64,000 bases of DNA, taken from positions 62,001 to 126,000 of the forward strand of contig NIVC01001522.1 of NCBI GenBank assembly GCA_002269645.1, given 5' to 3'. The translations under genes and the position numbers were made by a program. This document shows positions 9,419 through 62,733 of this stretch, piece after piece (position 1 is the stretch's first letter; every line of letters starts with the position of its first letter). The notes beneath the pieces were generated by a model. That model was not told the DNA's origin, ran no database searches, and saw only the letters and a program-made list of their open reading frames with translations. The stretch comes from Macrostomum lignano (taxonomy: Eukaryota).

Positions 9419-9618
9419 TGTAATATTTTATTCCTTGCCTTGGAGACAGTCTGAACTGTTAGCAATCGTGACAAATAATTAGCTGAATCATCGTATTGAT
9501 TTAATGTACGTTCGCTCTCTATGTACATCGCAGGCTTAACTTCAACTTGCATAAATAAAGCAATCACTGCCTCACGGGGCCTTCGTGTTTTTGGTGCTGC
9601 CAAATACCGCGTGTTACA
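9419..9618 (+). repeat. 5' LTR (200 bp)
   Basis: Starts TGTAA at 9419 and ends TTACA at 9618 (5-bp inverted termini). AATAAA at 9554-9559. The PBS follows 2 nt later. Confidence 0.8.
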
Positions 9619-10426
9619 AGTGGTAGCAGAGCGTACTGTGGCAGAGGGCGGCAGTCACCGTGCGATTCCTAGGGCGTTCAGCTCAGGCAACTTTAAGGAG
9701 TGGCTCCAGCGGTTTGAGCTGTGCGCGGCAGCCAACAAGTGGGTAAATGACAAGCATTTGCACCTGCCAACGTTTTTGGATGGTGAGGCTCTGGCTGTTT
9801 TTCTTGAGCTCGACGAGAATAGCAAGAGCGACTACAGCAAAGTGACCAAAGCTCTGAGCCAGGCATTTCACCCGGACAGCCAGCAATTCTCAGCGCTGGA
9901 TGCATTCGAGAGCCGGAAGCTGCTGCCGGGCGAATCTCCTCGGCTCTTTCTCTATCACCTGAAGCAGCTGCTAAAGGACGCTGGCATCAGCGAGGCAGGC
10001 GCAACGGCCACCATGCTGACTCACCAGTTCATTCGCGGACTGCCGGTGGACATCAGCAAGCAGATCAGAGCGGACGCGTCAGCCAAGACCGTGAGTGACG
10101 CTCTCGCACGGGCACAACTACTGGAGCTGCCTTCTGCCACCACGGACGGATTCAAGCAGCCTCTTGCAGCGGCAGCCGGAGCTGCAGGCAGTGCGGAGAC
10201 GGCAGAACTGCGGGCTGCGGTCAGCTCGCTGCAGGCGACCGTCCAAGACCTGGCGGCGAAGCTGGGCTCAGAGGTTTCGGACTCTTGCGTGATTCGCAGT
10301 GCGAGGAGACAGCGCGAGGTGACCTGCTGGAACTGCCACCGCCGCGGCCACATCGCCAGGAACTGCAATCAGCCGTCGGGAAACGGCACAGGCCGGGGCA
10401 GAGCCCGCACCCCTGGCCAGTTCTGA
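9521..10426 (+). CDS. gag: Retrotransposon Gag (capsid-like helical region plus CX2CX4HX4C zinc knuckle CWNCHRRGHIARNC); true start uncertain (GTG at 9638)
   Basis: Gypsy-Gag-like sequence (EWLQRFELCAAANKW, LPTFLDGEALAVF, FIRGLP) and a terminal CCHC motif. Confidence 0.85.
   Translation: MYIAGLTSTCINKAITASRGLRVFGAAKYRVLQVVAERTVAEGGSHRAIPRAFSSGNFKEWLQRFELCAAANKWVNDKHLHLPTFLDGEALAVFLELDENSKSDYSKVTKALSQAFHPDSQQFSALDAFESRKLLPGESPRLFLYHLKQLLKDAGISEAGATATMLTHQFIRGLPVDISKQIRADASAKTVSDALARAQLLELPSATTDGFKQPLAAAAGAAGSAETAELRAAVSSLQATVQDLAAKLGSEVSDSCVIRSARRQREVTCWNCHRRGHIARNCNQPSGNGTGRGRARTPGQF
9621..9632 (+). promoter_or_regulatory. Primer-binding site TGGTAGCAGAGC, complementary to the 3' end of initiator tRNA-Met
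   Basis: Lies directly after the LTR end. Animal tRNA-iMet ends in ...CUCUGCUACCA (established knowledge). Confidence 0.75.
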
Positions 10427-21499: not shown

Positions 21500-23870
21500 T
21501 CTGCCATCTCACTCTATATATCTCTGCCATGATGCCATCTCTCTCTATATCTCTGCCATCTCTCTCTGTAGTTCTCTGCCGTCTCTCTCTATTTCTCTGC
21601 CATCTCTCTCTATTTCTCTGCCATCTCTCTATTTCTCTGCCGTCTCTCTCTATTTATCTCTGCCATCTCTCTCTGTAGTTCTCTGCCGTCTCTCTCTATT
21701 TCTCTGCCATCTCTCTCTATTTCTCTGCCATCTCTCTATTTCTCTGCCGTCTCTCTCTATTTATCTCTGCCATCTCTCTCTATTTCTCTGCCATCTCTCT
21801 CTATTTCTCTGCCATCTCTCTCTATTTCTCTGCCGTCTCTCTCTATTTCTCTGCCATCTCTCTCTATTTCTCTGCCATCTCTCTCTATTTCTCTGCCATC
21901 TCTCTCTATTTCTCTGCCATCTCTCTATTTCTCTGCCGTCTCTCTCTATTTATCTCTGCCATCTCTCTCTATTTCTCTGCCATCTCTCTCTATTTCTCTG
22001 CCATCTCTCTCTATTTCTCTGCCATCTCTCTATTTCTCTGCCGTCTCTCTCTATTTATCTCTGCCATCTCTCTCTATTTCTCTGCCATCTCTCTATTTCT
22101 CTGCCGTCTCTCTCTATTTCTCTGCCATCTCTCTCTATTTCTCTGCCATCTCTCTATTTCTCTGCCGTCTCTCTCTATTTATCTCTGCCATCTCTCTCTA
22201 TTTCTCTGCCATCTCTCTATTTCTCTGCCATCTCTCTCTATATCTCTGCCATCTCTCTCTATTTCTCTGCCATCTCTCTATTTCTCTGCCATCTCTCTAT
22301 TTCTCTGCCATCTCTCTATATCTCTGCCATCTCTCTCTATATCTCTGCCATCTCTCTCTATTTCTCTGCCATCTCTCTATTTCTCTGCCATCTCTCTCTA
22401 TTTCTCTGCCATCTCTCTCTATATCTCTGCCATCTCTCTCTATTTCTCTGCCATCTCTCTCTCTATTTCTCTGCCATCTCTCTCTCTATTTCTCTGCCGT
22501 CTCTCTCTATTTATCTGCCATCTCTCTCTCTCTATTTCTCTGTTATCTCTCTATATCTCTGCCATCTCTCTCTATATCTCTGCCGTCTCTCTCCATATCT
22601 CTGCCGTCTCTCTCTCTATTTCTCTGTTATCTCTCTATATCTCTGCCATCTCTCTCTATATCTCTGCCGTCTCTCTCTCTATTTCTCTGTTATCTCTCTA
22701 TATCTCTGCCATCTCTCTCTATTTCTCTGCCATCTCTCTATTTCTCTGCCATCTCTCTCTATTTCTCTGCCGTCTCTCTCTATTTCTCTGCCATCTCTCT
22801 ATTTCTCTGCCATCTCTCTCTATATCTCTGCCGTCTCTCTCTCTCTCTATTTCTCTGTTATCTCTCTCTCTATTTATCTGCCATCTCTCTCTCTATTTCT
22901 CTGTTATCTCTCTCTCTAAATCTCTGCCATCTCTCTCTATTTCTCTGCCATCTTTCTCTATTTCTCTGTTATCTCTCTATATCTCTGCCATCTCTCTCTC
23001 TATTTCTCTGCCGTCTCTCTCTATTTATCTGCCATCTCTCTCTCTATTTCTCTGTTATCTCTCTCTCTAAATCTCTGCCATCTCTCTCTATTTCTCTGCC
23101 ATCTCTCTCTATTTCTCTGTTATCTCTCTATATCTCTGCCATCTCTCTCTATATCTCTGCCATCTCTCTCTATTTCTCTGTTATCTCTCTATATCTCTGC
23201 CATCTCTCTCTCTATTTCTCTGCCGTCTCTCTCTATTTATCTGCCATCTCTCTCTCTATTTCTCTGTTATCTCTCTCTCTAAATCTCTGCCATCTCTCTC
23301 TATTTCTCTGCCATCTCTCTCTATTTCTCTGTTATCTCTCTATATCTCTGCCATCTCTCTCTCTATTTCTCTGCCGTCTCTCTCTATTTATCTGCCATCT
23401 CTCTCTCTATTTCTCTGTTATCTCTCTCTCTAAATCTCTGCCATCTCTCTCTATTTCTCTGCCATCTCTCTCTATTTCTCTGTTATCTCTCTATATCTCT
23501 GCCATCTCTCTCTATATCTCTGCCGTCTCTCTCTCTATTTCTCTGTTATCTCTCTATATCTCTGCCATCTCTCTCTATTTCTCTGCCATCTCTCTATTTC
23601 TCTGCCATCTCTCTCTATTTCTCTGCCATCTCTCTCTATTTCTCTGCCATCTCTCTCTATATCTCTGCCGTCTCTCTCTATATCTCTGCCGTCTCTCTCT
23701 CTATTTCTCTGCCGTCTCTCTCTATTTATCTCTGCCATCTCTCTCTCTCTCTCTATTTCTCTGTTATCTCTCTCCCTATATCTCTGCCATCTCTCTCTAT
23801 TTCTCTGCCATCTCTCTCTATATATCCCTGCCATCTCTCTCTCTATTTCTCTGCCATCTCTTTCTCTCTC
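21500..23870. repeat. CT-rich 21-23-bp minisatellite (CTCTGCCATCTCTCTCTATTT), ~2.4 kb
   Basis: Direct reading. The unit varies by CT dinucleotide number. Confidence 0.95.
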
Positions 23871-24589
23871 TATACATAGTTATGTATCTCTGCCAGTTCT
23901 TTTTCTCTCTCCACCCCACCTCTCTCTCCCTTTTCAATTCCCCCGCATCTGTATTTTTATTCCCCTTTCAAAATGGTAATTGCCGAGGCCATAACTAGGT
24001 GTAGAGACAATCAGTGGCAATTGCAAAGCATCCATAAACTGGCCATCCAATGCAGTTTAATGCAGTTTACAGCCGCTAGGCAATAATTGCAGTTAACAGT
24101 CTTGTCGGTCTGCACCCTCTCAACCCTAACCCCATTTCCCAGCAAAATACTCCCGAATTCTCCCCAAAGATTACTTCCTACAACGCTCAACAGACTGCAC
24201 AGACACTTGAAATTGGCCTGAAATGTTGGTATGCAATAATCCAATATAAATAACTATTTATAGTATCTTGTATCCACGCTCGTAGATAAATCATATCGCA
24301 GATAAATGATAAATGTAATTAATCGGAAATTTGCAGCTTCGTAGTCGATTTCTGGGCTTATTTTTTCTATCGTATATTAGAAATCAAACCCCGAATACGT
24401 AATTGTCCTCGCGTTCTAAATATTAGGAATTTACAAATAATTCTTCTTTTCTTGGTTCCTCCTACTGACAAGTAGCATTAATAGGACATATGAACCGTTT
24501 TTAGTCAGAGACAACACAAGGAGTCACCGAACAAGAGACATACCAAAATGGACACGAGACAACCCCAATAACGATGAGAAACCCATAGG

Positions 24590-27500
24590 AGATCAGGCAT
24601 TCCAAGAAAGAGATGAGACACCCCAAGGAGATGAGACACTCCAAAAAAGAGATGAGACACCCCAAGGAGATGAGACACTCCAAGAAAGAGATGAGACACC
24701 CCAAGGAGATGAGACACTCCAAAAAAGAGATGAGACACCCCAAGGAGATGAGACACTCCAAGAAAGAGATGAGACACTCCAAGAAAGAGATGAGACACCC
24801 CAAGAAAGAGATGAGACACCCCAAGGAGATGAGACACTCCAAGAAAGAGATGAGACACCCCAAGGAGATGAGACACTCCAAGAAAGAGATGAGACACTCC
24901 AAGGAGATGAGACACTCCAAAAAAGAGATGAGACACCCCAAGGAGATGAGACACTCCAAGAAAGAGATGAGACACTCCAAGAAAGAGATGAGACACCCCA
25001 AGAAAGAGATGAGACACCCCAAGGAGATGAGACACTCCAAGAAAGAGATGAGACACCCCAAGGAGATGAGACACTCCAAGAAAGAGATGAGACACTCCAA
25101 GGAGATGAGACACTCCAAAAAAGAGATGAGACACCCCAAGGAGATGAGACACTCCAAGAAAGAGATGAGACACTCCAAGAAAGAGATGAGACACTCCAAG
25201 AAAGAGATGAGACACTCCAAGAAAGAGATGAGACACTCCAAGAAAGAGATGAGACACTCCAAGGAGATGAGACACTCCAAGAAAGAGATGAGACACTCCA
25301 AGAAAGAGATGAGACACTCCAAGGAGATGAGACACTCCAAAAAAGAGATGAGACACCCCAAGGAGATGAGACACTCCAAGAAAGAGATGAGACACTCCAA
25401 GAAAGAGATGAGACACTCCAAGAAAGAGATGAGACACTCCAAGAAAGAGATGAGACACTCCAAGAAAGAGATGAGACACTCCAAGGAGATGAGACACTCC
25501 AAGAAAGAGATGAGACACCCCAAGGAGATGAGACACTCCAAGAAAGAGATGAGACACTCCAAGGAGATGAGACACTCCAAGAAAGAGATGAGACACTCCA
25601 AGGAGATGAGACACTCCAAGAAAGAGATGAGACACTCCAAGGAGATGAGACACTCCAAGAAAGAGATGAGACACTCCAAGAAAGAGATGAGACACTCCAA
25701 GGAGATGAGACACTCCAAGAAAGAGATGAGACACTCCAAGAAAGAGATGAGACACTCCAAGGAGATGAGACACTCCAAGAAAGAGATGAGACACTCCAAG
25801 GAGATGAGACACTCCAAGAAAGAGATGAGACACTCCAAGGAGATGAGACACTCCAAGAAAGAGATGAGACACTCCAAGAAAGAGATGAGACACTCCAAGG
25901 AGATGAGACACTCCAAGAAAGAGATGAGACACTCCAAGAAAGAGATGAGACACTCCAAGGAGATGAGCCACTCCAAGAAAGAGATGAGACACCCCAAGGA
26001 GATGAGACACTCCAAGAAAGAGATGAGACACTCCAAGGAGATGAGACACTCCAAGAAAGAGATGAGACACTCCAAGGAGATGAGACACTCCAAGAAAGAG
26101 ATGAGACACTCCAAGGAGATGAGACACTCCAAGAAAGAGATGAGACACCCCAAGGAGATGAGACACTCCAAGAAAGAGATGAGACACTCCAAGAAAGAGA
26201 TGAGACACTCCAAGAAAGAGATGAGACACCCCAAGAAAGAGATGAGACACTCCAAGAAAGAGATGAGACACTCCAAGAAAGAGATGAGACACTCCAAGAA
26301 AGAGATGAGACACTCCAAGAAAGAGATGAGACACTCCAAGAAAGAGATGAGACACTCCAAGAAAGAGATGAGACACTCCAAGAAAGAGATGAGACACCCC
26401 AAGAAAGAGATGAGACACTCCAAGAAAGAGATGAGACACTCCAAGAAAGAGATGAGACACTCCAAGAAAGAGATGAGACACCCAAGAAAGAGATGAGACA
26501 CTCCAAGAAAGAGATGAGACACTCCAAGAAAGAGATGAGACACTCCAAGAAAGAGATGAGACACCCCAAGAAAGAGATGAGACACTCCAAGAAAGAGATG
26601 AGACACCCCAAGGAGGAGATGAGACACCCTAAGGAGATAAGACACGCCAAGAAAGAGATGAGACACTCCAAGAAAGAGATGAGACACTCCAAGAAAGAGA
26701 TGAGACACTCCAAGAAAGAGATGAGACACTCCAAGAAAGAGATGAGACACCCCAAGAAAGAGATGAGACACTCCAAGAAAGAGATGAGACACCCCAAGGA
26801 GGAGATGAGACACCCTAAGGAGATAAGACACGCCAAGAAAGAGATGAGACACCCCAAGGAGATGAGACACTCCAAAAAAGAGATGAGACACCCCAAGAAA
26901 GAGATGAGACACCCCAAGGAGAGGAGACACCCCAAGGAGGAGATGAGACACTCCAAGAAGGAGATGAGACACTCCAAGAAAGAGACGAGACACTCCAAGA
27001 AAGAGATGAGACACCCCAAGGAGGAGATGAGACACCCTAAGGAGATAAGACACCCCAAGAAAGAGATGAGACACTCCAAGAAGGAGATGAGACACCCCAA
27101 GGAGGAGATGAGACACCACAAGGAGGAGATGAGACACCCTAAGGAGATAAGACACCCCAAGTAAGAGATGAGACACTCCAAAAAAGAGATGAGACACCCC
27201 AAGGAGATGAGACACTCCAAAAAAGAGATGAGACACTCCAAAAAAAGATGAGATACTTCAAGAAAGAGATGAGACACTCCAAGAAAGAGATGAGACACTC
27301 CAAAAAAGAGTTGAGACACTCCAAGAAAGAGATGAGACACCCTAAGGTGATGAGACACCCCAAGGAGATGAGACACTCCAAGAAAGAGATGAGACACTCC
27401 AAGAAAGAGATGAGACACTCCAAAAAAGAGATGAGACACTCCAAAAAAGAGATGAGACACTCCAAGAAAGAGATGAGACACTCCAAGAAAGAGATGAGAC

Positions 27501-28425
27501 ACGCCAAGAAAGAGATGAGACACCCCAAGGAGATGAGACACTCCAAGAAAGAGATGAGACACTCCAAGAAAGAGATGAGACACTCCAAGAAAGAGATGAG
27601 ACACTCCAAGAAAGAGATGAGACACTCCAAGAAAGAGATGAGACACTCCAAGAAAGAGATGAGACACTCCAAGAAAGAGATGAGACACTCCAAGAAAGAG
27701 ATGAGACACTCCAAGAAAGAGATGAGACACTCCAAGAAAGAGATGAGACACTCCAAGGAGATGAGACACCCTAAGAAAGATATGAGACACCCCAAGGAGA
27801 TGAGACACCTTAAGGAGATGATACACCCTAAGGAGATGAGACACCCCAAGGAAATGAGACACCCCAAGGAGATGAGACACCTAAGAAAGAGATTAGACAC
27901 CCCAAGGAGATGAGACACCCTAAGAAAGAGATGAGACACCTTAAGGTGATGAAACACCCCAAGGAGATGAGACACACAAGAAAGAGATGAGACACCCCAA
28001 GGAGATGAGACACCCCAAGAAGGAGATGAGACACCCCAAGGAGATGAGACACCCTAAGAAAGAGATTAGACACCCTAAGAAAGAGATTAGACACCCTAAG
28101 GAGATGAGACACCCCAAGGAGATGAGACACCCTAAGGAGATGAGACACCCCAAGAAAGAGATAAGACACTCCAAGAAAGAGATGAGACACTCCAAGAAAG
28201 AGATGAGACACTCCAAGAAAGAGATGAGACACTCCAAAAAAGAGATGAGACACTCCAAAAAAGAGATGAGACACTCCAAGAAAGAGATGAGACACTCCAA
28301 GAAAGAGATGAGACACTCCAAGAAAGAGATGAGACACTCCAAAAAAGAGATGAGACACTCCAAAAAAGAGATGAGACACTCCAAGAAAGAGATGAGACAC
28401 CCCAAGAAAGAGATGAGACACCCAA
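24590..28425. repeat. 3.8-kb minisatellite of interspersed 21-bp (GAGATGAGACACTCCAAGAAA) and 18-bp (GAGATGAGACAC(C/T)CCAAG) units
   Basis: Direct reading. It is the source of all 200-1095-aa ORFs here. Confidence 0.97.
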
Positions 28426-29227
28426 GCAGGAAAAGACGAAGTAAAATGACACACCCACGAAGACAGTTAGAATAAATGCAAGCATAAATTCAGTGACAGA
28501 AGTGACAGAAATGCTGATCATCTAAGCTATAAAACACCGCGTCCCGCGTTGCCAGGCGGCAAAGACTGAGAAATTAATCTCAGAGAAAATCAGTACGGTG
28601 AAACCTCTTCCCCCCTCGGGAGCGAATAGACGAATTTTAATCAGGTCACGCAGCAGGGGCACATGGGAATGAGATCAGATAGGCGGAGGAGAATCAATGC
28701 AGACTCCGCCATCTCTTCCCTAATTCAATCTGAGCAGCAGGCACTCCAGGAAAATCTGCACCAGCCCACCCGAGACCTCCAGAACGAATTCAGATCTCTC
28801 TTATTTGACTAATTAATTAAATCCCTGAGCCTTCTGCCAATCATTGCCAATATAAATATTCCCAGCAGGCGGCAGAAGGCATATCGAGCCAGATTGTCCT
28901 CATTTCCAGCGGGCAGGAAATTCGATCAAGTGAAAAAAAACAGAAACAGCAACTGACAGAACGGCATTTTATGGTGATTGTTTTTGTGAAGAAGGAAAAA
29001 AACTAAAAAAAGATTGTAGACAGACAGGTTTATTAACAAAAGTTTGTGTAGAAAAAAACTGTAAAAAAATATTCGTTCGAAAGCATTGCTTTGAAATTTT
29101 TCTGGATAAAAAATAAAAATTTTTAGGAAACTGGCTTCTTCCAGGGATAAAATCTTGCTCAGTTTAGGAATAAATATTATCATGAGTCGTTGGCAACCAC
29201 GCTTTGAGATAACAGTCTGACACAATA

Positions 29228-30637: not shown

Positions 30638-33600
30638 CTAGTAGTCGCCTAGATCGAAGCAGTCGTAGACGTCGCTTGCATCCTCATCCGCGACCGCTTC
30701 AGCGTCGGTTTGTGCACCAGACTGGAGCGACTCCGGATCCTGGATTGGGATAAGAAACGGCGAGAGATGGGACTGTTGATAAATGATTGAAGAGAGTCAG
30801 AATCTACATTTTGAGTAATCTGTAAGCATAAAGTCTGAAGACTGCAGAGTATGGTTTTGAAATTTTTGACCGATGCCTGCTGGGATTCAGGTTTTTAATT
30901 TGGCAACCTAAATTCGGACACAGGATGCCCATGGTATTTTGCGATTCTGATGCTAAAAAGACACTGAGAAAAACAAATAGACACACAGAAGGCAGACATA
31001 TGTTGCTTCTTCAAAAACAGCAAACAGAAGACACACACAGACAGACACAGCAGACACACAGACAGACACACAGACACACAGACAGACACAGCAGGCAGAC
31101 ACAGATAGACACAGCAGGCAGACACAGACAGACACAGCAGGCAGACACAGATAGACACAGACAGACACAGCAGGCAGACACAGACACAGCAGGCAGGAAC
31201 AGTAGACAAGCAGGCACACACAGACAGACACAGCAGGCAGGAACAGTAGACAAGCAGGCACACACAGACAGACACAGCAGGCAGGAACAGTAGACACACA
31301 CTGACACACACAGACACACACGCAGCTCCCTCACCTCCCAGTCCAGCGGGTACCGCAGCAGGCCAGCGAGGCCGCCGAAGCCGTTGGCAAACTGCACTCC
31401 CTCGGGGCTGCGGCAGGCCAGCACGCGCAGCTGAGCCCCGGCCGCCGGGCAGCCCGCATCTGCCAGCCAGTCGATCAGCGGCCTCGGCTCATCCAGGCCG
31501 CAGTCGGTGACCTCTACACCATCTCCATGCTGACCGCCAGCAGCACTCCGACAGGCTTGCCTAGGAATCAGCTTCAGCTGCCGGCTGGCGGTCAGCACGC
31601 AGTCGTAGGGCAGCTCCTCCCAGGCTAGCACAGTGTCCACCGCGCCAGATTCTAGTGCGGCCACAGTCTGCCCAACACCGTAGCAAACCAGCTGCTGCCG
31701 GCCGTGACCCAATTCTTCGAATAGTCTGGCTAGGCAGCGCTTTTCTTCTAGATAGGCCAGGCCAGTTAAACAGTCTGAGGCCAGCTCAATGGCCTGGTTG
31801 AGGCCGACCTCACCGCCGTAGGCTATGTCCACCACCTGGAGTGTCTGGACATGTAGATTAGATATGCATTTGTATTTATATGCTGGTGTATTGTTTGCTG
31901 CACTCCTACAGTCCTCTTTGATATATCCTAATCTTTAATCGTTTTCTTTCCGCCCCTCTCTTCATCTTTCCGCCCCTCTCTTCATCTTTCCGCCCCTCTC
32001 TTCATCTTTCCGCCCCTCTCTTCATCTTTCCGCCCCTCTCTTCATCTTTCCGCCCCTCTCCTCATCTTTCCGCCCCTCTCCTCATCTTTCCGCCCCTCTC
32101 TTTATCTTTCCGCCCCTCTGTTCATCTTTCCGCCACCCTCTCTTCATCTTTCCGCCCCTTTCTTTATCTTTCCGCCACCCTCTCTTCATCTTTCCGCCCC
32201 TTTCTTTATCTTTCCGCCACCCTCTCTTCTTCTTTCCACCCAACTTAATTATCTTTCCGCCCCTCTAATTATCTTTCCGCCCCCTCTCTTCATCTTTCCG
32301 CCCCTCTCTTCATCTTTCCGCCCCCCTCTCTTTATCTTTCCGCCCCCTCTAACTATCTTTCCGCCCCCTCTAATTATCTTTCCGCCCCCTCTAATTATCT
32401 TTCCGCCCCCTCTAATTATCTTTCCGCCCCCTCTAATTATCTTTCCGCCCCTCTCTAAACATCACTCCGCCGCTCTTTTCATATTTCCGCCCCTCACTTC
32501 ATATTTCCGCCCCTCTCTTCATATTTCTGCCCCAGTAACCAACCTTGCCAGCGAGTCTGGCATCCAGCAGGCCGCCCTGCTGCAATTCAACTTTGAAGTC
32601 GGCCGACCCGGCTAAAACAAGTCCGTCCACGGCCGGCCGGCCGCTGTCCGGCTCCAGAAACAGTCCGGACGCGAGTTCGGCCACTTTGCGCAAATAATTA
32701 TGCCGCTTCTCCAATCGGATACGGGCAAACCGGACGGCGGACTGTCCGCCTCGGCCGTGTTTTCTGGGCAACTCGACCGACATTCGGTGCAGCACCCGGC
32801 GCTCGGAGCCGCTCAGCACAGCGAAGAGGGCGCCAGAGCCGTCCAGCACGATGAAGCCGAACCTGCGCTCGTCAGTTTCCAGCATCGACTGCAGCGCCTC
32901 CGTGTGGAACCGGCTGTCGCACAGGTAGATGGGCGATTGGACAGGTTTGCACGGCTCCAAGTCTATTGTTACCTGGGTATGTGGGGGAAGGGGGTCGCGA
33001 TTTCTTATTTTCTAATAAATTCACTTTCGATACATATCGGCTACTTCAGTGTTTAATCGATACATACCGGCTACTTCAGTGTTTAATCGATACATATCGG
33101 CTACTTCAGTGTTTAATCGATACATATCGGCTACTTCAGTGTTTAATCGATACATATCGGCTACTTCAGTGTTTAATCGATACATACCGGCTACTTCAGT
33201 GTTTAATTAATACATATCGGCAACTTCAGTGTTTAATCGATACATATCGGCTTCTTTCGTAAATTATCGATACATATCGGCTATTTAAGAAATTTTTTGA
33301 TACATATCGGCTACTTACGTAAATTATCGATACATATCGGCTTCTTTCGTAAATTATCGATACATATCGGCTTCTTTCGTAAATTATCGATACATATGAG
33401 CTACATATATTAACATCAATAAGAACTCTAACCCAACCTTTTTCTCTTTCCCATCCTCCGTGACAATAGTCCCACAGAAGATCACAAGGCCATTGTCTGG
33501 CACCCGACTGTACACCTTCAGACGCTGCTGCACCGAGGCCAGGGCCCACAGCACAGCCAGTCGATTGGCACGCGATTTAATGTTCCCAGCTGCTCCAATC

Positions 33601-33914
33601 TCCTCAGCTAGCAGCTTGGCGGGCCGACTCAACGGGTGCCGCGGCGGCACCAGCAGGGTGATCAGACTGGTGCCATTGTGACCACGGACTCCGTCCAGTG
33701 CGCGAAGGAGTCGCTTCAGCTTCCATTGCTGCTGCTGTTGCAGTTCCTGGCTGCGAAAATCAGCTGAAAAAGCCGATGGTTGATTGACAGCCAGTGCTGT
33801 TGCCATGACAACAACAAGCTGTTGCTACATGCAATAGAATAGTTGAGGGTATTTACCTTCGAATGTTCGGCTATCAATCGCAGTCTCTGATCCTTTTAGC
33901 GGGTCCTCAGTCAT
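30638..33914 (-). CDS. ETF1: Divergent eukaryotic release factor 1 (eRF1-like). Exons: complement(30638..30739, 31335..31844, 32544..32972, 33438..33763, 33857..33914), ~474 aa. Alternative unspliced start ATG 33806 gives ~469 aa.
   Basis: Motifs [50 protein letters not shown] and C-terminal FDLGDY* (human FDLDDY*). All junctions are GT-AG and keep frame. Exon 1 is less certain than exons 2-5. Confidence 0.92.
31015..31322. repeat. CAGA/CA-type compound repeat in eRF1 intron 4 (CAGACACACAGCAGGCAGA...)
   Basis: Direct reading. It begins a few bases from the donor at 31334. Confidence 0.9.
31945..32525. repeat. ~20-23-bp minisatellite (TTTCCGCCCCTCTCTTCATC) filling eRF1 intron 3
   Basis: Direct reading. 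Confidence 0.92.
33028..33395. repeat. 30-bp minisatellite (TACATATCGGCTACTTCAGTGTTTAATCGA) with two subtypes, in eRF1 intron 2
   Basis: Direct reading. It gives 10-aa periodicity in ORF 32966..33262. Confidence 0.92.
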
Positions 33915-34292
33915 CTCTGATCCTTCAGTGGGTCCTCAGCCACCCTCTCTGATCCTTCAGTGGATCCTCAGCCACCCTCTCTGATCCTTCAGTGGGTCCT
34001 CAGCCACCCTCTCTGATCCTTCAGTGGATCCTCAGCCACCCTCTCTGATCCTTCAGTGGGTCCTCAGCCACCCTCTCTGATCCTTCAGTGGATCCTCAGC
34101 CACCCTCTCTGATCCTTCAGTGGATCCTCAGCCACCCTCTCTGATCCTTCAGTGGGTCCTCAGCCGTCCTCTCTGATCCTTCAGTGGGTCCTCAGCCACC
34201 CTCTCTGATCCTTCGGTGGGTCCTCAGCCGTCCTCTCTGATCCTTCAGTGGGTCCTCAGCCACCCTCTCTGCTCCTTCAGCGGGTCCTCAGC
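33915..34292. repeat. 32-bp minisatellite (TCCTTCAGTGGGTCCTCAGCCACCCTCTCTGA), ~12 copies, directly upstream of the eRF1 start
   Basis: Direct reading. Confidence 0.93.
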
Positions 34293-34761
34293 TACCCAAT
34301 GCCTTTAAATCACAATAATAAAACGCATTGAGCAAGCCAAATAATATATTTAAATTTCATTGCAACATTTGCACTAAGAAACATTGAAAAAAGAAACAAT
34401 TAAAACAAATTGCACTAACTGAATTGCATAATATCAATAATTTTACATAAAATTAATTGCACATATTAAATAACAATTAGTAAGATTGCATGACTAGATT
34501 GACAGTTATATAATAGCATTGTTTATACAAATACTACAGTACCATAATAGAAATATGAATATTAAATTATTGCACAATTCCTTCGCTGAAACACGAACTT
34601 AAATTAGATTAACACACTTTCATTGCCAGACAGAAAAAACACAAAATTATAGTTTCAATAATTACCAAATATCTACAAACAAAAAGCAAAGCAGCTTATT
34701 AACAATGAACCAGAAGTCAAGCAGGCTGTTTATTAGTTGCTGTATCATTGAACTATCTTGC

Positions 34762-35922: not shown

Positions 35923-38900
35923 CTAGGGCAAGGATGGATCAGTGCCAGCGGAATGCTGCTGATGCTGTTGATAGGACATCATCATTGGCATGCTGTGACC
36001 ATAGGCAGCTGTGTAATACTCATGATGTTGCTGTTGCTGTTGCATAAGCATCAGCTGTTGATCGTCAGGATGATGAAATTCACCAGGCTGGTGCTGAAGC
36101 TGCTGCTGGTAGGGCTGATAAGAAGCAGATGTCCAACAATAATCTTCGGTGGCACTGCTGCTAAACCACATGGAATTATTGTCGGACACAATCTGCTGAC
36201 TGGAACCAGCGGCTTGTTGAGCCACAGGCGTTGTCTCATTGGTTGCGTTCGTTGGAGCAGCAGAAGCAGAAGACTCGTAACTGTAGAACTGATTAGCTGC
36301 CGCCTGCTGAGCATCGTGCAAGCTCTTAGCCGATGTACAGGTGCAGACAAAGAACTCGAACTCGCCAGAGTAAGGATTGTGAAATGCTGCCAGGCAGCAG
36401 CGGAGCAGAACGGGCTCAGTCTGATTGGCACCAGTAGTCAGGCGGACCAGAGCTGTCTGGGGTGCGCCTTTGGCGGAGGCGGCCGAGTCAAATGCTGACC
36501 TGAGCGCCGCTTGCTCCTCGGGCGTGGCCACCTGGGTGGGATTGGAGGTTATGGTGATTAGGGTTCGTTTTATGGTGATTGGAGTTGGTGTTATGGTGAT
36601 TGGAGTTGGTGTTATGGTGATTAGGGTTCGTGTTATGGTGATTGGAGTTGGTGTTATGGTGATCCGGGTTGGTGTTATGGTGATCCGGGTTGGTGTTATG
36701 GTGATTATGGTTGGTGTTATGGTGATTAGGGTTGGTGTTATGGTGATTGGATTGGTGTTATGGTGATTAGGGTTGGTGTTATGGTGATTGGATTGGTTAT
36801 GGTGATCCGGGTTGGTGTTATGGTGATTATGGTTGGTGTTATGGTGATTCGGGTTGGTGTTATGGTGATTGGAGTTGGTGTTATGGTGATTCGGGTTGGT
36901 GTTATGGTGATTGGAGTTGGTGTTATGGTGATCCGGGTTGGTGTTATGGCGATTGGAGTTGGTGTTATGGTGATTCGGGCTCGTAATAACTTTAACAAAC
37001 CAAAAAAGGTCCCTTGGTGTTATTAAAGTTAAGCAAATTTGGTGTGTCTTAAATTGTTTAAAAAAGTACTTTTATCCTGTATCATTAAGCGACACCAGTA
37101 GCCTTTCAAAGGCTACTTAAACTCACCAAATCAAAGAACAATTTGCCCAGCAACTCGTGCGGCTGGTAGCCCAACACGTTAGCCGTGCGCTGGTCGCAGA
37201 AGCTGATGCGGGAGTCGGCAGACAGCCTGGCCACGAACTCGTGCTGACTGTGCGCGCTCAGGTCGCTGCCGCTGCCTCCGGGACCGCCAGGGAGTGACGT
37301 CACCTGACACAGCGGTAACGAGATGAACGGCCCGTTAGTCTATTATTTATTAATTATTACTAATTAGTAATAGTGTGGCTAACCTGCAGCCTGGCAATGC
37401 CAACCAGGCACTGATGCCCGCCTGCTCCGCCGCTGCCGCTGCCGCTTCCGACGCCGCCGCCGACGGTTGATTCTCCGGATGTCGATGCCGACGAGCCGGC
37501 AGAATGAGGGTGCTGGTGAAGCTGCTGATAGTGCTGATGCTGATGATGAAGCTGGTGCACGTCCTCCGCCATGGGCGCGTGTACGTTGCCCTGTTTGTGC
37601 CGAGGAAAATTAAATTAGTTTATTAGAAACTTACACGCAATTTTCTTAGAAACCGACATTCGATTTTCTTAGAAATCAGAAACCGCATTTTTGGAAACCG
37701 AGACCCGATTTTCTTAGAAACAGCCAAAATTTTCTTGGAAAACGAGACACTTCTTAGAAACCGACACTCGATTTTCTTAGAAACCGACACAAGTTTCTTG
37801 GAAACCGAGACGCCATTTTTCTTAGAGACCGGCACTCGAGTTTCTTAGGTATCAACACACGATTTTCTTAGAAACCGACACTAGATTTTCTAAGAAACCG
37901 ACACTCGATTTTCTTAGAAACCGACACAAGTTTCTTTGGAACAGAGACGCCATTTTTCTTAGAAACCGGCACTCGAGTTTCTTGGGTATCAACACACGAT
38001 TTTCTTAGAAAGCGACACTAGATTTTCTAAGAAACCGACACTCGATTTTCTTAGAAACCGACACAAGTTTCTTGGAAACCGAGACGCCATTTTTCTTAGA
38101 AACCGGCACTCGAGTTTCTTAGGTATCAACACACGATTTTCTTAGAAACCGACACTAGATTTTCTAAGAAACCGACACTCGATTTTCTTAGAAACCGACA
38201 CAAGTTTGGTGTGTCTTAAATTGTTTAAAAAAGTACTTTTATCTTAGAAACAGAGACGCCATTTTTCTTAGAAACCGGCACTCGAGTTTCTTAGGTATCA
38301 ACACACGATTTTCTTAGAAAGCGACACTAGATTTTCTTAGAAACCTAAACTCCTTGGAAGTTTCATGGAAACCGAGACGCCATTTTCCGAGAAACCAACA
38401 CTCGAGTTTCTTAAGTATCAACAGGAGTTTATTGGAAAACAACAGCAAGTTACTTTTGAAAACTAAATACAAGTTTCTTGGAGATTGACACGTAATTTTC
38501 AAGAGAATCTATATTTATAAGAAACTTAAAGCAGAAAACAGATTAAGGCTAAGCTTTCTTGGAACTATATTTTACCCGCTGCTGATGCTGATGACTTGGC
38601 CAATTCTTCAAATAGCCTGTCACGTGAGTAACAGCGTAATGATGCCCGTCTGGACAGGGGCCGAGCATGTTGCGCTGCCTCATGCGAACAGTCGGCAGGG
38701 ACTGCTGGGGACAAGCCGCAGCCGACATTGGATCAGAGAGGCTGTTCACCGCGCCGGCCGAGGCCGCTGCAGCGGGACCGCCCGCGCCAACGCGCATCCG
38801 GCAGATAAAAGCGCGCCTGGCGCCCATTGTGCTGCGCATTTGGGCTGCCAAATATAGTTGGGGGGGGGCTGCGTGTAGGGTGCATTGTGGAGGTCATAGA

Positions 38901-40577
38901 TGTTTGAGTTAACCAACATCAACTTTCTAATCCAGAAAGTGACACCAGTTGAAACTTCTGTGGTGACACCATCTGAAATCCCTGATGTTATACCATCTGA
39001 CACTCAAGGTGACACCATCTGACACTCAAGGTGACACCATCTGACACTCCTGAGGTGACACCACCTGACACTCAAGGTGAAACCACCTGACACTCCTGAT
39101 GTGACACCATCCTGAGGTGACACCACCTGACACTCCTGATGTGACACCATCCTGAGGTGACACCATCTGACACTCCTGAGGTGACACCATCTGACACTCC
39201 TGAGGTGACACCACCTGACACTCCTGAGGTGACACCATCTGACACTCAAGGTGACACCATCTGACACTCCTGAGGTGACACCACCTGACACTCAAGGTGA
39301 CACCACCTGACACTCCTGATGTGACACCATCCTGAGGTGACACCACCTGACACTCCTGATGTGACACCATCCTGAGGTGACACCATCTGACACTCCTGAG
39401 GTGACACCATCTGACACTCCTGAGGTGACACCACCTGACACTCCTGAGGTGACACCATCTGACACTCCTGAGGTGACACCATCTGACACTCCTGAGGCGA
39501 CACTATCTGACACTACTGAGGTGACACTATCTGACACTCCTGAGGTGACACCATCCTGAAGTAACACCATCTGACACTCCTGAGGTGACACCACCTGACA
39601 CTCAAGGTGACACCACCTGACACTCCTGATGTGACACCATCCTGAGGTGACACCATCTGACACTCCTGAGGTGACACCATCTGACACTCCTGAGGTGACA
39701 CCATCTGACACTCCTGAGGTGACACCATCTGAAACTCCTGAGGTGACACCATCTGAAACTCCTGAGGTGACACCACCTGACACTCCTGAGGTGACACCAT
39801 CTGACACTCCTGAGGTGACACCACCTGACACTCCTGAGGTGACACCACCTGACACTCCTGAGGTGACACTATCTGACACTCCTGAGGTGACACCATCCTG
39901 AAGTGACACCATCTGACACTCCTGAGGTGACACCACCTGACACATAAGGTGACACCATTTGACACCGACAAAGTCACCTAGCACTAACCGTGATGGCCGT
40001 CCTTCTTCACGGTGCCAGTTTTGAGATCGAGTATCCTTGCCCCAGCTGCATCGGTGGGCGACAATTGATCTTGAATCCGTTCGCAGTCGTCGGGATGCAC
40101 CAGATCGTAGAGACTCCGCTGCAGCCAGTCGGCCTGGGAGCAACCTAGCACGGGCCCTACAGAGTCGCTAACGTAGACAATCTGACCAGTGTCGCATTGG
40201 CAAACAAACAGGAAGCCATCGGCCGCCTCCAGTATGAGGTGCTTCAACTCTTGATCGCTGAGAAACGATGGTTTATAAGCGTCCGAGCCGCCTATGCCAG
40301 TGTTGCCAACGCCTCTAAGACCTTTCATATGGGTGACGGCCATTCTTAGAATAGTGAGTTTATCCGGCTTGCGAGCTAAACTGGTACAACTGGGCACCAT
40401 GTCGCACAGTTCGTTAATATAAGCCGTCATTTTGTTCCGTCTGCGACGCTCAATCTCGCAGTGACTCTCCCTGGCGTAGCGCTCCTTCTCTAAGCAGTCG
40501 GACGGGTCTTTGCTTGACAGGGGTGGAGAGCTGCTGCTAGCATTGGAGTCGTCCATCACTGCAAGCATGAGACCCAT
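35923..40577 (-). CDS. ARNT: ARNT/tango class II bHLH-PAS transcription factor. Exons: complement(35923..36531, 37127..37303, 37384..37590, 38576..38844, 39989..40577), ~616 aa.
   Basis: b[31 protein letters not shown]...[41 protein letters not shown]...[14 protein letters not shown] / [11 protein letters not shown] / [10 protein letters not shown] / CLVGIARLQ|VTS. PAS-B EFVARLS...DQR...[11 protein letters not shown]...[17 protein letters not shown]-rich tail. Junctions are GT-AG and keep frame. Confidence 0.95.
36545..36980. repeat. 21-bp minisatellite (GTTATGGTGATTGGAGTTGGT) in ARNT intron 4
   Basis: Direct reading, with 7-aa periodicity VMVIGVG. Confidence 0.93.
37620..38470. repeat. ~23-bp monomer minisatellite (TTTTCTTAGAAACCGACACTCGA) organised as a 137-bp higher-order repeat, in ARNT intron 2
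   Basis: The marker GGTATCAACACACG occurs at 37848, 37985, 38122 and 38294. Confidence 0.9.
38940..39975. repeat. 24-bp minisatellite (GACACCATCTGACACTCCTGAGGT) filling ARNT intron 1
   Basis: Direct reading, with 8-aa periodicity VTPSDTPE. Confidence 0.95.
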
Positions 40578-58890: not shown

Positions 58891-59537
58891 GTGAGATAGG
58901 CGTACTTTTAATTGTACTAATTAGCTGACGAGGCATTAATATCGGAATAGATACTCCCGCCGTTTACCCAACATGCAACATAATTTTCGCTTATTAATCT
59001 TTATTTGTCATCCATCGTGCAACAGTTTAATAATAATCATAGTAATAATCTACAGAAAACATTCAACACTAATTAGCTGACGAAGCATTTTTATTACTTG
59101 ATTACAGTCAGCTGCTCCCGCCGTTTGCCCTGCAACTTTCTATTAGAAAAACAACGCGGCGCGTGCATTGTTTCTCCTCGTGTTGTCAGTTGAACGGGGG
59201 GGCATTAAATAATCGATTCCGATAATGATCGATCGACAGAAGCAGAAATGCACACGCCGCTTGAGAGGGCAGGTCTTGACTTTAGCCAAAAACACATGGT
59301 TTGGATCGCGTGCCTGTCTTACCCAATGCCCCAGTCCAGGGTAGCAAATGTGCGGAGGGGGTGTGGTGTGTTTGTCGGATTTAATAAAAGCTTCTTCTAC
59401 GATCTAATCTTATTCACTCTCTTCTGTGTGTCTCCTCTCTGTCCCCTGCGTTGCATATTCATACACACGCATATATACACAATATAATCTGAATTGCTGC
59501 GTTGGAAAAGCGGAAACACAAACAGCACAGCAACAAA

Positions 59538-62500
59538 ATGTCAACTACGAAAGAGGCGGAGTCTTCCGTTGACGATCGGCATCTGTCTTGTCTAGCCGAC
59601 GGTCTGCCACTGTCACCGCTGCCGCCTCCATACGAGCCCGACCCAAGCCTGCCCCATGCTCCAGTCCGCCGTGGCAACCGTCTGAACCGTCGGGACAAAC
59701 GCCTGGCCGTACGCAACGCGCTGCGCTATTTCCCAGCCGAGCTGCACAGCCTTCTGGCTGGCGAGTTTGCCGCCGAGCTGACCAAATACGGGCATATTTA
59801 TATGTACCGGTTCAAGCCCAGGTTCCCCATTAGGGCCTACCCTGTGCAGCTGTATCCGGGCAAGAGCTTGGCTGGTCGCGTCATTATGCTAATGATCTGC
59901 AATAATTTAGACCCGGCAGTGGCTCAATTCCCCGAAGAGCTTGTCACGTATGGCGGCAATGGTCAGGTGTTCTCTAATTGGGCCCAATTTTGGGTTACTA
60001 TGCGGTATCTAGCCGAGCTGACCGAGCAGAGTACGCTAACACTGCACAGCGGCCATCCTATGGGTCTGTTTCCTAGCGGCCCGGAGTCGCCAAGGATGAT
60101 TGTCACCAACGGTATGATGGTGCCGAACTACTCAACTGCGGCTGGCTACGAGAGACTGTTCGCCTTGGGGGTCACCCAGTACGGTCAGATGACTGCGGGC
60201 AGCTTCTGCTATATTGGACCGCAGGTGAGGAGATGCGCTGACTGTTACAGGTGTGCTTGTGTATTAGTATTAGTATTGTGTATTAGTAATATTGGTATTC
60301 GCGTGATCTGCGTATGGGTTTGTCACGTGACCTGTCCTGTTATTAGATTTGATCACGTGACCTATCTTGTCAGTAGGTTTTATCACATGACCTATCGCAT
60401 GGTAGATTTCATCATGTGATTTATCTTGTCCACTAGATTTTATCACGTGACCTCTCTTGTCAGTAGATTTTATCACGTGACCTATCTTGTCCACTAGATT
60501 TTATCACGTGACTTATCTTGTCCACTAGATTTTATCACGTGACCTATCCTGTCATTAGATTTTATCGCGTAACCTTTATTGTCCATAAATTTTATCACGT
60601 GACATATCATCTCAGTAAGGGTTTATCACGTGACTAGATTTGCATCACGTGATCTAATAGTTTGTTATATTTTTCGCTACTTCAATCTTAAATGAATCCA
60701 TTAATATAAAACTGCTAAGCTCGTAGAAATGTCCCTAATATCAGTAATGATATTTCTTATGCTCTACTGATGTCAGTAGCTAATCTAGCCCCTACGATAT
60801 TTTTTCAATCATATCCTTGCAATTCAGGGTATCGTTCACGGCACCACATTGACGTTGTTAAACGCCGGACGTCGAATGCTTTCAACCACCGGAGGAGGCC
60901 AAGCGGCCAATTCGGACAATTCATTGTTGGCTGGCCGAGTTTTTGTCAGCAGCGGCCTTGGCGGCATGAGCGGCGCTCAGGCTAAAGCCGCCGTTATCTG
61001 CGGCTGCGTTGGCGTCATTGCCGAGGTGTCCGAGGAGGCCCTGGCCAAACGGCATCGTCAGGGCTGGCTGGACGAGCGCTCGGACAGTTTGGACGATCTG
61101 ATCGAGCGGATTCAACGGCATCGAGCCGCTGGTAAAGGCGTATCAATCGGTTACCATGGCAACGTGGTTGACGTTTGGGAACGCCTGGTTGAAGTGCACG
61201 TGACCACGGGGGAGTCCCTGGTTGATCTGGGATCGGATCAGACCTCCTGCCACAATCCGTTTCTGGGCGGTTACTACCCGGTGGGAGTCGAGTACGAGGA
61301 GGCCAGGTAAGAATTATTGTGTTAAATGTGTATTCAGCACATGAATTTGTACACAATGAACTGTACATGTACAGCACATGAGCGGTGTACACAAAGAACT
61401 GTACATGTACAGCACATGAGCTGTGTACACAATAAATTGTACATGTACATGTACAGCACGAGCTGCGTACACAATGAACTGTACATGTACAGCACATGAG
61501 CTGTGTACACAATGAACTAATTGTACATGTACAGCACATGAGCTGTGTGCAAAATGAGCTGTACATGTGCAACACATGAACACATTCAATCTTACATGTA
61601 CTCAATCGCTCGCTTAAGTTTGCATTGCTTACGCGCACCCAAAATTAGTGTGTTTTCGGTTGCGCAACCAATGCACATTGTTTGGCTTTGTTCATCATCG
61701 CAAGCATCACCAACCCCCCATCCGCAGACGCATGATGGACAGTCAGCCGGATCAGTTCCGCTTACTTGTCGAAGCCAGCTTACGTCGTCAAATCGAAGCC
61801 ATCAATTATCTAAGCGAAAAGTGCAGCGTGTACTTTTTCGACTACGGCAACGCGTTTCTATTGCAAGCGTCTCGTGCTGGGGCGGACGTCCTTGCCGTCA
61901 AGGATGTCGGAGTTGACGACAAGGACGACGAGCAACTGGACGAGAGCGAGTCGTCATCCAGCAGCAGGCCGCCAAGCTTTCGCTATCCATCCTACGTGCA
62001 GGACATCATGGGCGACATTTTCTCGCTGGGATTTGGCCCGTTCAGATGGGTCTGCGCCTCTGGCTTGGCCGCCGATCTCAAGCTGACCGACAGGCTGGCT
62101 AGCGAGGTCCTGGACTCGCTCGCCAGTGAGCCCAGCCTGCCCGAGTGCATTGCGCAACAGTATCTGGACAATCGGCGCTGGATTATAGAGGCCGATTCGC
62201 ATCAGCTGGTGGTCGGGTCTCAAGCCCGGATATTGTACTCCGATCTGTCTGGCAGGCTGGCTTTGGCCAATGCTTTCAACTGTGCCGTTAGCGACGGCCG
62301 GCTGTCCGGTCCTGTGGTGCTCAGTCGGGATCATCACGACGTGTCCGGTACGGACAGTCCGTTCCGAGAGACTAGCAATGTGTATGACGGCTCGGCTGTG
62401 TGCGCCGATATGGCCGTGCACAATGCCCTGGGCGACGCTTGCCGCGGTGCCACCTGGGTTGCGCTGCACAATGGCGGCGGCACCGGCTGGGGTCAGGCGG

Positions 62501-62733
62501 TCAATGGCGGCTTCGGTTTGGTGCTGGATGGCAGTCAGGAGGCTGGGGAGGCGGCCAAGCGGGTTCTGCACTGGGATGTCAGCAATGGGATCGCCAGGCG
62601 CTGCTGGTCCGGGCACCCGCTGGCCAGGCTGGCAGCTGGCAGGGCTCAGGCTGAGTGGCCAGACGGTCAGATGCAGCTGACAGTGCCTAGTGTGGCTAGC
62701 GATCAGCTGATCGATGCCCTGTTTATCGATTGA
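59538..62733 (+). CDS. UROC1: Urocanate hydratase (eukaryote-type urocanase). Exons: 59538..60224, 60828..61306, 61728..62733, ~723 aa.
   Basis: NALRYFP..H..LA.EFA.EL..YGHIYMYRF; NNLDPAVAQFPEELVTYGGNGQVFSNWAQF; GQMTAGSFCYIGPQ|GIVHGTTLTLLNAGR; SSGLGGMSGAQAKA; SDQTSCHNP; FFDYGNAFL; GFGPFRWVC; SRDHHDVSGTDSPFRETSN; WVALHNGGGTGWG. Junctions are GT-AG and keep frame. Confidence 0.96.
60320..60655. repeat. ~31-bp minisatellite carrying TCACGTGA palindromes, in UROC1 intron 1
   Basis: Nine perfect TCACGTGA copies counted between 60323 and 60652. Confidence 0.9.
61340..61600. repeat. ~38-bp minisatellite (TGTACATGTACAGCACATGAGCTGTGTACACAATGAAC) in UROC1 intron 2
   Basis: Direct reading. Confidence 0.88.

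Follow-up and report, generated by a model that had tools for sequence, protein, structure and literature searches.

The class-1 release factor eRF1 is among the most conserved eukaryotic proteins, and its decoding pocket has been studied almost wholly through laboratory mutants and through ciliate and trypanosomatid variants that are tied to changes of the genetic code. To our knowledge, eRF1 is single-copy in animals. Here we describe an eRF1-like gene of the flatworm Macrostomum lignano, BOX15_Mlig016649g2 in GenBank, which lies on the minus strand of a 64,000-nucleotide stretch of DNA (positions 62,001 to 126,000 of contig NIVC01001522.1, assembly Mlig_3_7, GCA_002269645.1). This whole stretch is referred to as the window, and positions are given in window coordinates unless another contig is named. 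The gene is probably a functional eRF1 paralogue specific to a lineage in the genus Macrostomum, which arose as a retrocopy and in which the decoding domain was first remodelled and then constrained; its sequence suggests that it may have altered termination properties compared to canonical eRF1. Roughly one in four near-invariant positions, including the TAS of TASNIKS and residues next to the GTS and YxCxxxF elements, has been rewritten, and the outcome was then kept by purifying selection, in what appears to be a standard-code animal, and this animal is a transgenic laboratory model that is amenable to RNA interference.

The canonical metazoan eRF1 (ETF1; human P62495, PDB entries 1DT9, 3E1Y and 5LZT) matches the M. 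lignano protein in its three Pfam domains and in the predicted fold, and the two share the GGQ and NIKS motifs, E55, the YxCxxxF motif, the GTS loop and an acidic C-terminal tail of the form FDL-DY (residues are given in human numbering throughout). In contrast to the canonical factor, to which it is about 51% identical, the M. lignano protein has AAG instead of TAS, G73W, a histidine insertion, F117C, S123P, N129S and K130R; its mini-domain region is shortened and not conserved, and its gene uses none of the conserved intron positions. Duplicated termination factors are known from mammals, where GSPT2 (eRF3b) is a retrocopy of GSPT1. Like the Macrostomum gene as we interpret it, GSPT2 is a duplicate without parental introns that has been kept by selection. 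It encodes the GTPase eRF3 and has stayed near its parent, whereas the Macrostomum gene encodes a codon-reading eRF1, is heavily remodelled and has three new introns. That the eRF1 fold can be re-purposed is illustrated by Dom34/Pelota and Vms1/VLRF1, ancient eRF1-fold paralogues in ribosome rescue, and the M. lignano protein has weak matches to them in Pfam and Foldseek. Neither GGQ nor NIKS is present in Pelota, which reads no stop codons, whereas the M. lignano protein has both motifs; this rules out a Pelota-like rescue factor.

An altered position 70, as found in M. lignano, is also known from Euplotes and Blepharisma, which have Ala70 and recognize only UAA and UAG (UAR), and from Blastocrithidia, which has Ser70Gly; the Ala70 of M. 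lignano is the state for which a restriction of UGA decoding has been shown (PMC3025575, PMC4381064, PMC12153298). In those organisms, however, the variant is the sole eRF1 and UGA has been reassigned, while M. lignano appears to have a standard code and Ala70 is absent from the orthologue described below. Lastly, a second form of eRF1 in one animal, as may hold for Macrostomum, has been described as human eRF1 isoform 2 (PMC11277123). This isoform results from alternative splicing of one gene and is 33 residues shorter, whereas the Macrostomum gene is separate and diverged. In the literature on Macrostomum and eRF1, ETF1 or release factors we found no publication describing the gene, and the searchable portions of the supplements of Macrostomum transcriptomics papers contained no entry for ETF1, 'release factor' or the Mlig gene identifiers.

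Family membership and remodelling of the decoding domain

Judged from its sequence, the gene encodes a member of the eRF1/aRF1 class-1 release factor family. The Pfam domains eRF1_1, eRF1_2 and eRF1_3 were matched with 66, 119 and 61.5 bits, all over the gathering cut-offs, and the top PDB sequence matches were the eRF1s of wheat, human and rabbit (about 1e-129). The catalytic GGQ is found at 32750-32742 in the context HGRGGQSA, and the elements that read the stop codon, namely NIKS, E55, YxCxxxF and GTS (33674-33666), are all kept; the retained residues include E55 (codon at 33602-33600), N61, I62, K63, S64, Y125, C127, F131, T32 and S33. A 40-sequence alignment served to build an AlphaFold2 model, which shows the three-domain eRF1 fold with a mean predicted local distance difference test score of 74.9; confidence is low for the N-terminal extension, the mini-domain region and the tail. 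Its best superpositions are with eRF1 as seen in the eRF1-eRF3 pre-termination complexes 5LZT, 3J5Y and 4CRN, with template modelling scores of 0.70-0.72 when normalised to the target length. In the C-terminal region F291, F406 and the LRY of GILRY are kept, and Y301 and I294 are each replaced by leucine or valine; we take residues of this kind to be involved in eRF3 binding.

Among the proteins listed in our searches, a single non-lignano relative, P0004, scored well above the canonical proteins (486 amino acids, 69% identical), so that the orthologue in a related species that the preliminary description of this gene had called for was indeed found. It is encoded without introns on L001, a 1578-nucleotide Logan contig from run SRR28338165. 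This contig starts with ACTGCGAAGACTCAATTTATTGCATG, which is the last 26 nucleotides of the published 35-nucleotide spliced leader of M. lignano (PMC8629364), and this marks the contig as a mature, trans-spliced mRNA of a flatworm of the Macrostomum type.

The preliminary description had portrayed the protein as a strongly divergent eRF1 with a remodelled domain for stop codon recognition, and our comparisons bear this out. The M. lignano protein is 50.9-53.1% identical to the eRF1s of human, lophotrochozoans, cnidarians, sponges and parasitic flatworms, whereas those are 75-85% identical to the human protein. To quantify the divergence, we made use of 195 near-invariant columns, defined as having at most one exception each across a set of 111 canonical eRF1s that covers animals, plants and protists. 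M. lignano departs from the canonical state in 47 of these 195 columns and the orthologue in 52 (24-27%); 40 positions are changed in both species, 31 of them to the identical residue. All motif substitutions that had been listed beforehand (T58A, S60G, F56I, V66A, S70A, G73W, S123P, N129S and the histidine insertion) were found in the sequence, including the GCT codon of S70A at 33557-33555, and F117C and K130R can be added to them. TASNIKS reads AAGNIKS in both M. lignano (33593-33573) and the orthologue, T58 being near-invariant across the 111 canonical sequences. The canonical group is marked by the full TASNIKS heptapeptide together with Ser70, and both Macrostomum-type proteins depart from it by AAGNIKS, M. 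lignano alone also by Ala70. The one-residue insertion (His43, 33680-33678), located before NGTS, is conserved in both species, and YxCxxxF takes the form YLCDSRF in M. lignano (32927-32907).

The distribution of these changes over the protein is uneven. In the N domain 32 derived states are common to both species, compared to 6 that are specific for M. lignano and 5 that are specific for the orthologue, whereas for the C domain the states of the two species mostly disagree. The changes frozen in both species include AAG-NIKS, Trp73 (33548-33546), the histidine insertion, Cys117, Ser122-Pro123 and Arg130, while position 129 is occupied by serine or alanine (N129S/A) in the two proteins. The mini-domain region is shortened and not conserved. 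This pattern, read from the two aligned proteins, marks a functional shift or a time of redundancy on the stem, after which constraint set in.

Selection was assessed with the Nei-Gojobori method. Compared to L001, the rate of nonsynonymous substitution (dN) is 0.25 and that of synonymous substitution (dS) about 1.2-1.5, which is saturated, giving a dN/dS of 0.17-0.23 overall. By domain, dN/dS is 0.05 for N, 0.13 for M and 0.42 for C, with amino acid identities of 87%, 74% and 57%, respectively. The remodelled decoding domain is therefore the part of the protein that is best conserved between the two species. A ratio near 1, named in the preliminary description as the outcome that would speak against function, is refuted by these values. 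Together with the transcript-based gene model and the orthologous trans-spliced mRNA, they also confirm the earlier view that the gene is not a pseudogene.

Gene structure and origin

On the minus strand between 30000 and 34600, eRF1-like coding blocks alternate with repeat-filled spacers. A search of protein collections returned a match of 99-100% to P0001, which is PAA66883.1, annotated as M. lignano 'hypothetical protein BOX15_Mlig016649g2, partial'. The corrected gene model has four exons that together comprise 1410 nucleotides and encode 469 amino acids without in-frame stops, and its translation equals PAA66883.1 exactly once the four residues of read-through from the 5' untranslated region are removed from P0001. 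Exon 1 (33806-33438, 369 nucleotides, amino acids 1-123) starts with the ATG at 33806-33804; the N-terminus MATALA is kept in the orthologue and is used by the GenBank model. Exon 2 (32972-32544, 429 nucleotides, amino acids 124-266) carries YLCDSRF and GGQ. Exon 3 (31844-31335, 510 nucleotides, amino acids 267-436) encodes the last part of the M domain together with the rapidly evolving C domain and its shortened, low-confidence mini-domain region; it begins at 31844 rather than at 31835, which adds the residues TLQ (VLK in canonical proteins). Exon 4 (30739-30638, 102 nucleotides) encodes amino acids 437-469, the acidic tail ending with YDCFDLGDY, and the stop codon TAG at 30640-30638.

The preliminary description was thus correct in that the gene has a complete spliced open reading frame (ORF) on the minus strand, ending with FDLGDY-TAG at 30638-30640 and hence with UAG as its own stop. 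Its five-exon model was not correct at the start, as the true ATG is at 33806 and there is no intron at that place. The proposed first exon (33914-33857) falls within the last units of a 32-bp tandem array with 13 copies (33884-34297), is absent from the GenBank model and is not conserved in the orthologue. All exon borders have GT..AG and all three introns are in phase 0. The GenBank annotation of M. lignano was built from a genome-guided RNA-seq assembly (PMC5730564), and the splice junctions of the gene are therefore transcript-derived.

The introns had been described as retained. They are real and spliced, but none is located at an ancestral eRF1 position. To define the latter, intron positions of the eRF1 genes of Echinococcus multilocularis and Lingula anatina were mapped in human numbering, and six were common to both: 29/30, 87/88, 134/135, 244/245, 339/340 and 411/412. 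The Macrostomum gene uses none of these six. Intron 1 (33437-32973, 465 nucleotides) is at 109/110, where canonical genes have no intron site, and consists mostly of a 30-bp minisatellite with 12.6 copies. Intron 2 (32543-31845, 699 nucleotides) is at 249/250, compared to 244/245 in canonical genes, and is mostly a 20/42-bp minisatellite (31945-32533). Intron 3 (31334-30740, 595 nucleotides) is at 420/421, compared to 411/412, and contains 23/44-bp repeats rich in CA and CTG (31024-31325). Each intron is thus largely minisatellite. The loss of all parental introns that is typical for processed retrogenes is observed at the six positions shared by Echinococcus and Lingula, and because none of these ancestral positions is occupied, the gene structure suggests a processed retrocopy of a canonical flatworm eRF1 mRNA that later gained three new introns.

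The relationship to flatworm eRF1 is indicated by four derived states that the gene lineage has in common with Neodermata and that are rare elsewhere. Furthermore, cestode eRF1s came first among the normal-length canonical matches listed for a profile of the two orthologues. Based on these two observations, we conclude that the gene has its origin in a flatworm eRF1. Downstream of the stop codon there is no evident poly(A) tract. At 21 nucleotides 5' of the ATG (33828-33866), the sequence ATTCTATTGCATG resembles the 3' part of the spliced leader, ATT-TATTGCATG, with a weaker likeness further 5'. The significance of this resemblance is borderline, as about 1% of 100-nucleotide genomic windows score equally well (p about 0.01), and the stretch is less conserved in the copy L007 introduced below, where it is degraded to TATTTTATGCAG. 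It could be a relic of the retroposition of a trans-spliced mRNA, or the result of chance; for both of the above reasons, the 13-mer was dropped as proof of retroposition.

Copies within M. lignano and competing explanations

A cluster at 90% identity contains three GenBank loci, namely Mlig016649g2 in the window, Mlig006332g2 and Mlig026666g1. Each of the three has a bHLH-PAS gene upstream of it, which identifies them as homeologues or haplotigs of the polyploid genome and not as dispersed copies. The 274-kb M. lignano contig, the synteny at the three loci and the Macrostomum spliced leader on the orthologue also rule out an origin from a contaminant or symbiont. The second locus, L006 (BOX15_Mlig006332g2; contig NIVC01000695.1, 6377-21275), has a coding sequence identical to that of the window copy. 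Its intron 1 measures 14.9 kb versus 465 nucleotides in the window copy, and within it a unit of about 5.7 kb occurs three times, each time with a CT-rich array that spans about 1.3 kb. The third locus, L007 (BOX15_Mlig026666g1; contig NIVC01001600.1, 6004-10364), differs from the window copy by 6 synonymous and 6 nonsynonymous changes and a 3-nucleotide deletion, with a dN/dS of 0.34 (p = 0.06 against neutrality).

Several observations weigh against a functional second factor of retrocopy origin. In L007, a +4 (CGGC) and a -4 (GACT) indel that are 43 nucleotides apart scramble about 15 codons of a conserved segment of the M domain. The scrambled segment is also present in the UniProt model P0002 from an older assembly, which is no independent confirmation as both assemblies share PacBio data; L007 is thus either a decaying homeologue or the product of an assembly error common to both. 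The cluster of the M. lignano protein contains no Logan transcript that would encode it in full length. At residue 208 of the orthologue, immediately next to the catalytic GGQ, the universally conserved HGRGGQ has become HARGGQ (G181A), which hints at a looser catalytic constraint. No poly(A) relic, target-site duplications or parent gene were identified for the proposed retrocopy, the case for which comes from the intron positions of this one gene compared to those of the Echinococcus and Lingula genes. Finally, we obtained no canonical eRF1 of M. lignano or any other Macrostomum among the best 120 matches of either of two full-length protein searches (one with the single sequence, one with a two-species profile). 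Both M. lignano proteomes were in the searched database, and a flatworm-type canonical copy would be expected near the cestodes, which makes this absence mildly informative. The best 120 were, on the other hand, drawn from about 6000 matches and fall within a band of 10-15 in bit score.

The first of these points, together with the equal numbers of synonymous and nonsynonymous changes in L007, the fast C domain with its dN/dS of 0.42 and the missing full-length Logan transcript, would be compatible with a decaying or functionless duplicate that arose by polyploidy or retroposition and is transcribed but idle. We consider this highly improbable, as the ORF is intact in two species across saturated synonymous divergence, dN/dS is as low as 0.05 in the N domain, 31 derived residues are fixed in both species, the orthologue is represented by a mature trans-spliced mRNA, and the coding sequence is intact and identical at two M. 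lignano loci.

The absence of a canonical protein bears more directly on the possibility that the gene is the only eRF1 of Macrostomum, either as a fast-evolving orthologue or as a retrogene that replaced its parent, and that it reads all three stop codons proteome-wide. It would fit this possibility that no canonical Macrostomum eRF1 is among the matches listed although these do include four to seven divergent-type entries from M. lignano, that the known residues for stop codon contact and catalysis (N61, K63, E55, Y125, C127, F131, T32, S33 and GGQ) are all kept, that the N domain is under strong purifying selection, and that M. lignano appears to have a standard code, with 98.1% BUSCO completeness and a urocanase gene ending at TGA. 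Conversely, changes at 24-27% of the near-invariant positions and a dN/dS of about 0.2 are hard to square with a sole essential factor. The same holds for the replacement of Ser70 by alanine in M. lignano and for G181A beside GGQ in the sister species. In addition, the gene has none of the six ancient introns. This points to a retrocopy, and a gene of that kind normally coexists with its parent. As the best 120 of about 6000 matches lie within a narrow score band, the absence of a canonical protein from them is weak evidence. A sole eRF1 is therefore a possibility that we take seriously but regard as the less probable one. If it were true, a metazoan would terminate all translation with a factor that lacks TAS and, in M. 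lignano, also Ser70, which would redefine which eRF1 residues are indispensable.

Based on a gene structure like that of a retrocopy, the replacement of one in four invariant residues, G181A in the orthologue and a dN/dS near 0.2, we favour a second paralogue, and it is likely that the canonical parent is still present. Three candidates for this parent were rejected. P0016 comes from a gene without introns on a compact metagenome contig of 277 kb and is probably from a protist. P0107 is encoded by a transcript without spliced leader, which shows no excess of rare states in common with the paralogue. A group of 438-amino-acid proteins starting with 'MATAVSP' belongs with sponges, P0287 being from Amphimedon. 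An exhaustive representative search yielded no further distinct members of the divergent clade. As a separate observation, the NCBI protein P0124 (231 amino acids, from a 4843-bp contig) is a fragment of an eRF1 that looks unrelated; it has 40% identity with the C-terminal half and, in common with the Macrostomum protein, the unusual strings GGLLDA-L, LASDCL, VCYG, ALESGAV and FGGLAA-LR. By these strings, it may represent another divergent eRF1 lineage.

Position 70, recognition of UGA and possible function

The preliminary description had stated that Ala70 is the state of Euplotes and that Blastocrithidia has Ser70Gly, and had proposed on this basis that the paralogue may terminate poorly at UGA. 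The literature part of this proposal is confirmed. In human eRF1, S70A lowers kcat/KM for UGA 2.4-fold without eRF3 and 1.3-fold with eRF3-GTP, while A70S gives omnipotence back to the N domain of Euplotes (PMC3025575). The same S70A substitution in yeast increases readthrough about 8-fold in a UGA-specific manner (PMC4381064), and Ser70Gly is indeed carried by the eRF1 of Blastocrithidia (PMC12153298). The conclusion for this gene has to be abandoned as far as a retained property is meant. Ala70, Ala66 and Ala76 are states of M. lignano only, whereas the orthologue has Ser70, Val66 and Thr76. Ala70 is the only residue tied specifically to UGA, and a lineage-wide conservation of a non-hydrogen-bonding residue at position 70, as in Euplotes, is not observed, the orthologue having serine. 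Since the orthologue keeps Ser70, poor activity at UGA cannot be a function that selection has preserved. In M. lignano itself, Ala70 predicts a weaker recognition of UGA, which would be a recent change at the species level and not a conserved property of the paralogue.

These data also bear on the possibility that the gene encodes a UGA-blind factor, recognizing UAA and UAG only and conserved as such in the manner of Euplotes, which would promote UGA readthrough or selenocysteine insertion. Such a factor would account for Ala70 in M. lignano, would be in line with the in vitro and yeast effects of S70A, and would match the finding that both orthologues (M. lignano and L001) terminate their own ORF with TAG. 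It is nonetheless quite unlikely. Besides Ser70 in the orthologue, the effect of S70A is only 1.3-fold in the presence of eRF3-GTP, S33, the hydrogen-bond partner of S70, is kept, and no other change maps to a known UAR-only signature. The changes at N129 and K130 are even what we take to be features of the opposite, UGA-only factors of ciliates. With regard to the host, TGA follows the C-terminal domain as the stop of the urocanase ORF in the window, and the M. lignano transcriptome is 98.1% BUSCO-complete under standard translation (PMC5730564). From this limited evidence M. lignano appears to use the standard genetic code, with no sign that UGA is read as sense.

Returning to the reading we prefer, that of a constrained paralogue, the following course of events can be proposed. 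A canonical flatworm eRF1 mRNA would have been retrocopied, and the copy would later have acquired its three minisatellite-filled introns. In the stem lineage, a burst of substitutions changed the N domain, also at positions that are invariant in all other eukaryotic eRF1s (among them TAS to AAG, G73W, the histidine insertion, F117C, S123P and N129S/A-K130R). Strong purifying selection has acted on the N domain ever since, while the C domain, the binding region for eRF3 and ABCE1, and the tail go on diverging. The present-day protein is predicted to enter the ribosomal A site at stop codons, to read the codon with NIKS, E55, YxCxxxF and GTS, and to hydrolyse peptidyl-tRNA with GGQ. Its preference for stop codon or context, its efficiency or its GTPase partner may be shifted, so that termination or readthrough would be modulated where the gene is expressed. 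If the preference is shifted, the gene would show how a second factor tunes termination, and it would provide naturally tested substitutions for engineering eRF1 toward readthrough or the incorporation of non-canonical amino acids.

A more specific version of this idea is that two class-1 factors split the work as bacterial RF1 and RF2 do, with a canonical eRF1 and a remodelled factor that has a different preference for the stop codon or the +4 context, and perhaps a GTPase partner of its own. Its preference would then be set by AAG-NIKS, Trp73, the histidine insertion at the GTS loop, Pro123 and Ser/Ala129-Arg130. We regard such a division as rather unlikely; if true, the gene would encode the first codon- or context-selective second eRF1 in a standard-code animal.

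Surroundings of the gene in the window

Directly upstream of the eRF1-like gene, a bHLH-PAS transcription-factor gene is located on the minus strand (35923-40565; 612 amino acids in GenBank, stop TAG). The suffix 'g2' is an indication that this gene and the eRF1-like gene were placed in a single transcriptional unit during assembly. The urocanase gene is found on the plus strand (59502-62733), with Urocanase_N, Rossmann-like and Urocanase_C domains in successive ORFs, the last of which has the stop TGA. An ATG-initiated ORF of 301 amino acids on the plus strand (9521-10426) gave a weak match to the zf-CCHC zinc knuckle below the Pfam cut-off, and may be a gag remnant of a retroelement. Tandem repeats are abundant: at least 25 separate arrays scoring more than 600 fill the window, and all three introns of the eRF1-like gene are among the places they occupy. 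Two especially large minisatellite arrays with 21-bp units (21533-23754 with 105 copies and 24589-28426 with 190 copies) have an extreme strand skew, with a GC skew down to -0.72 and an AT skew up to 0.68. The window also contains an AT-rich block between 42000 and 50000, with a GC content of 28-36% compared to 42-53% elsewhere.

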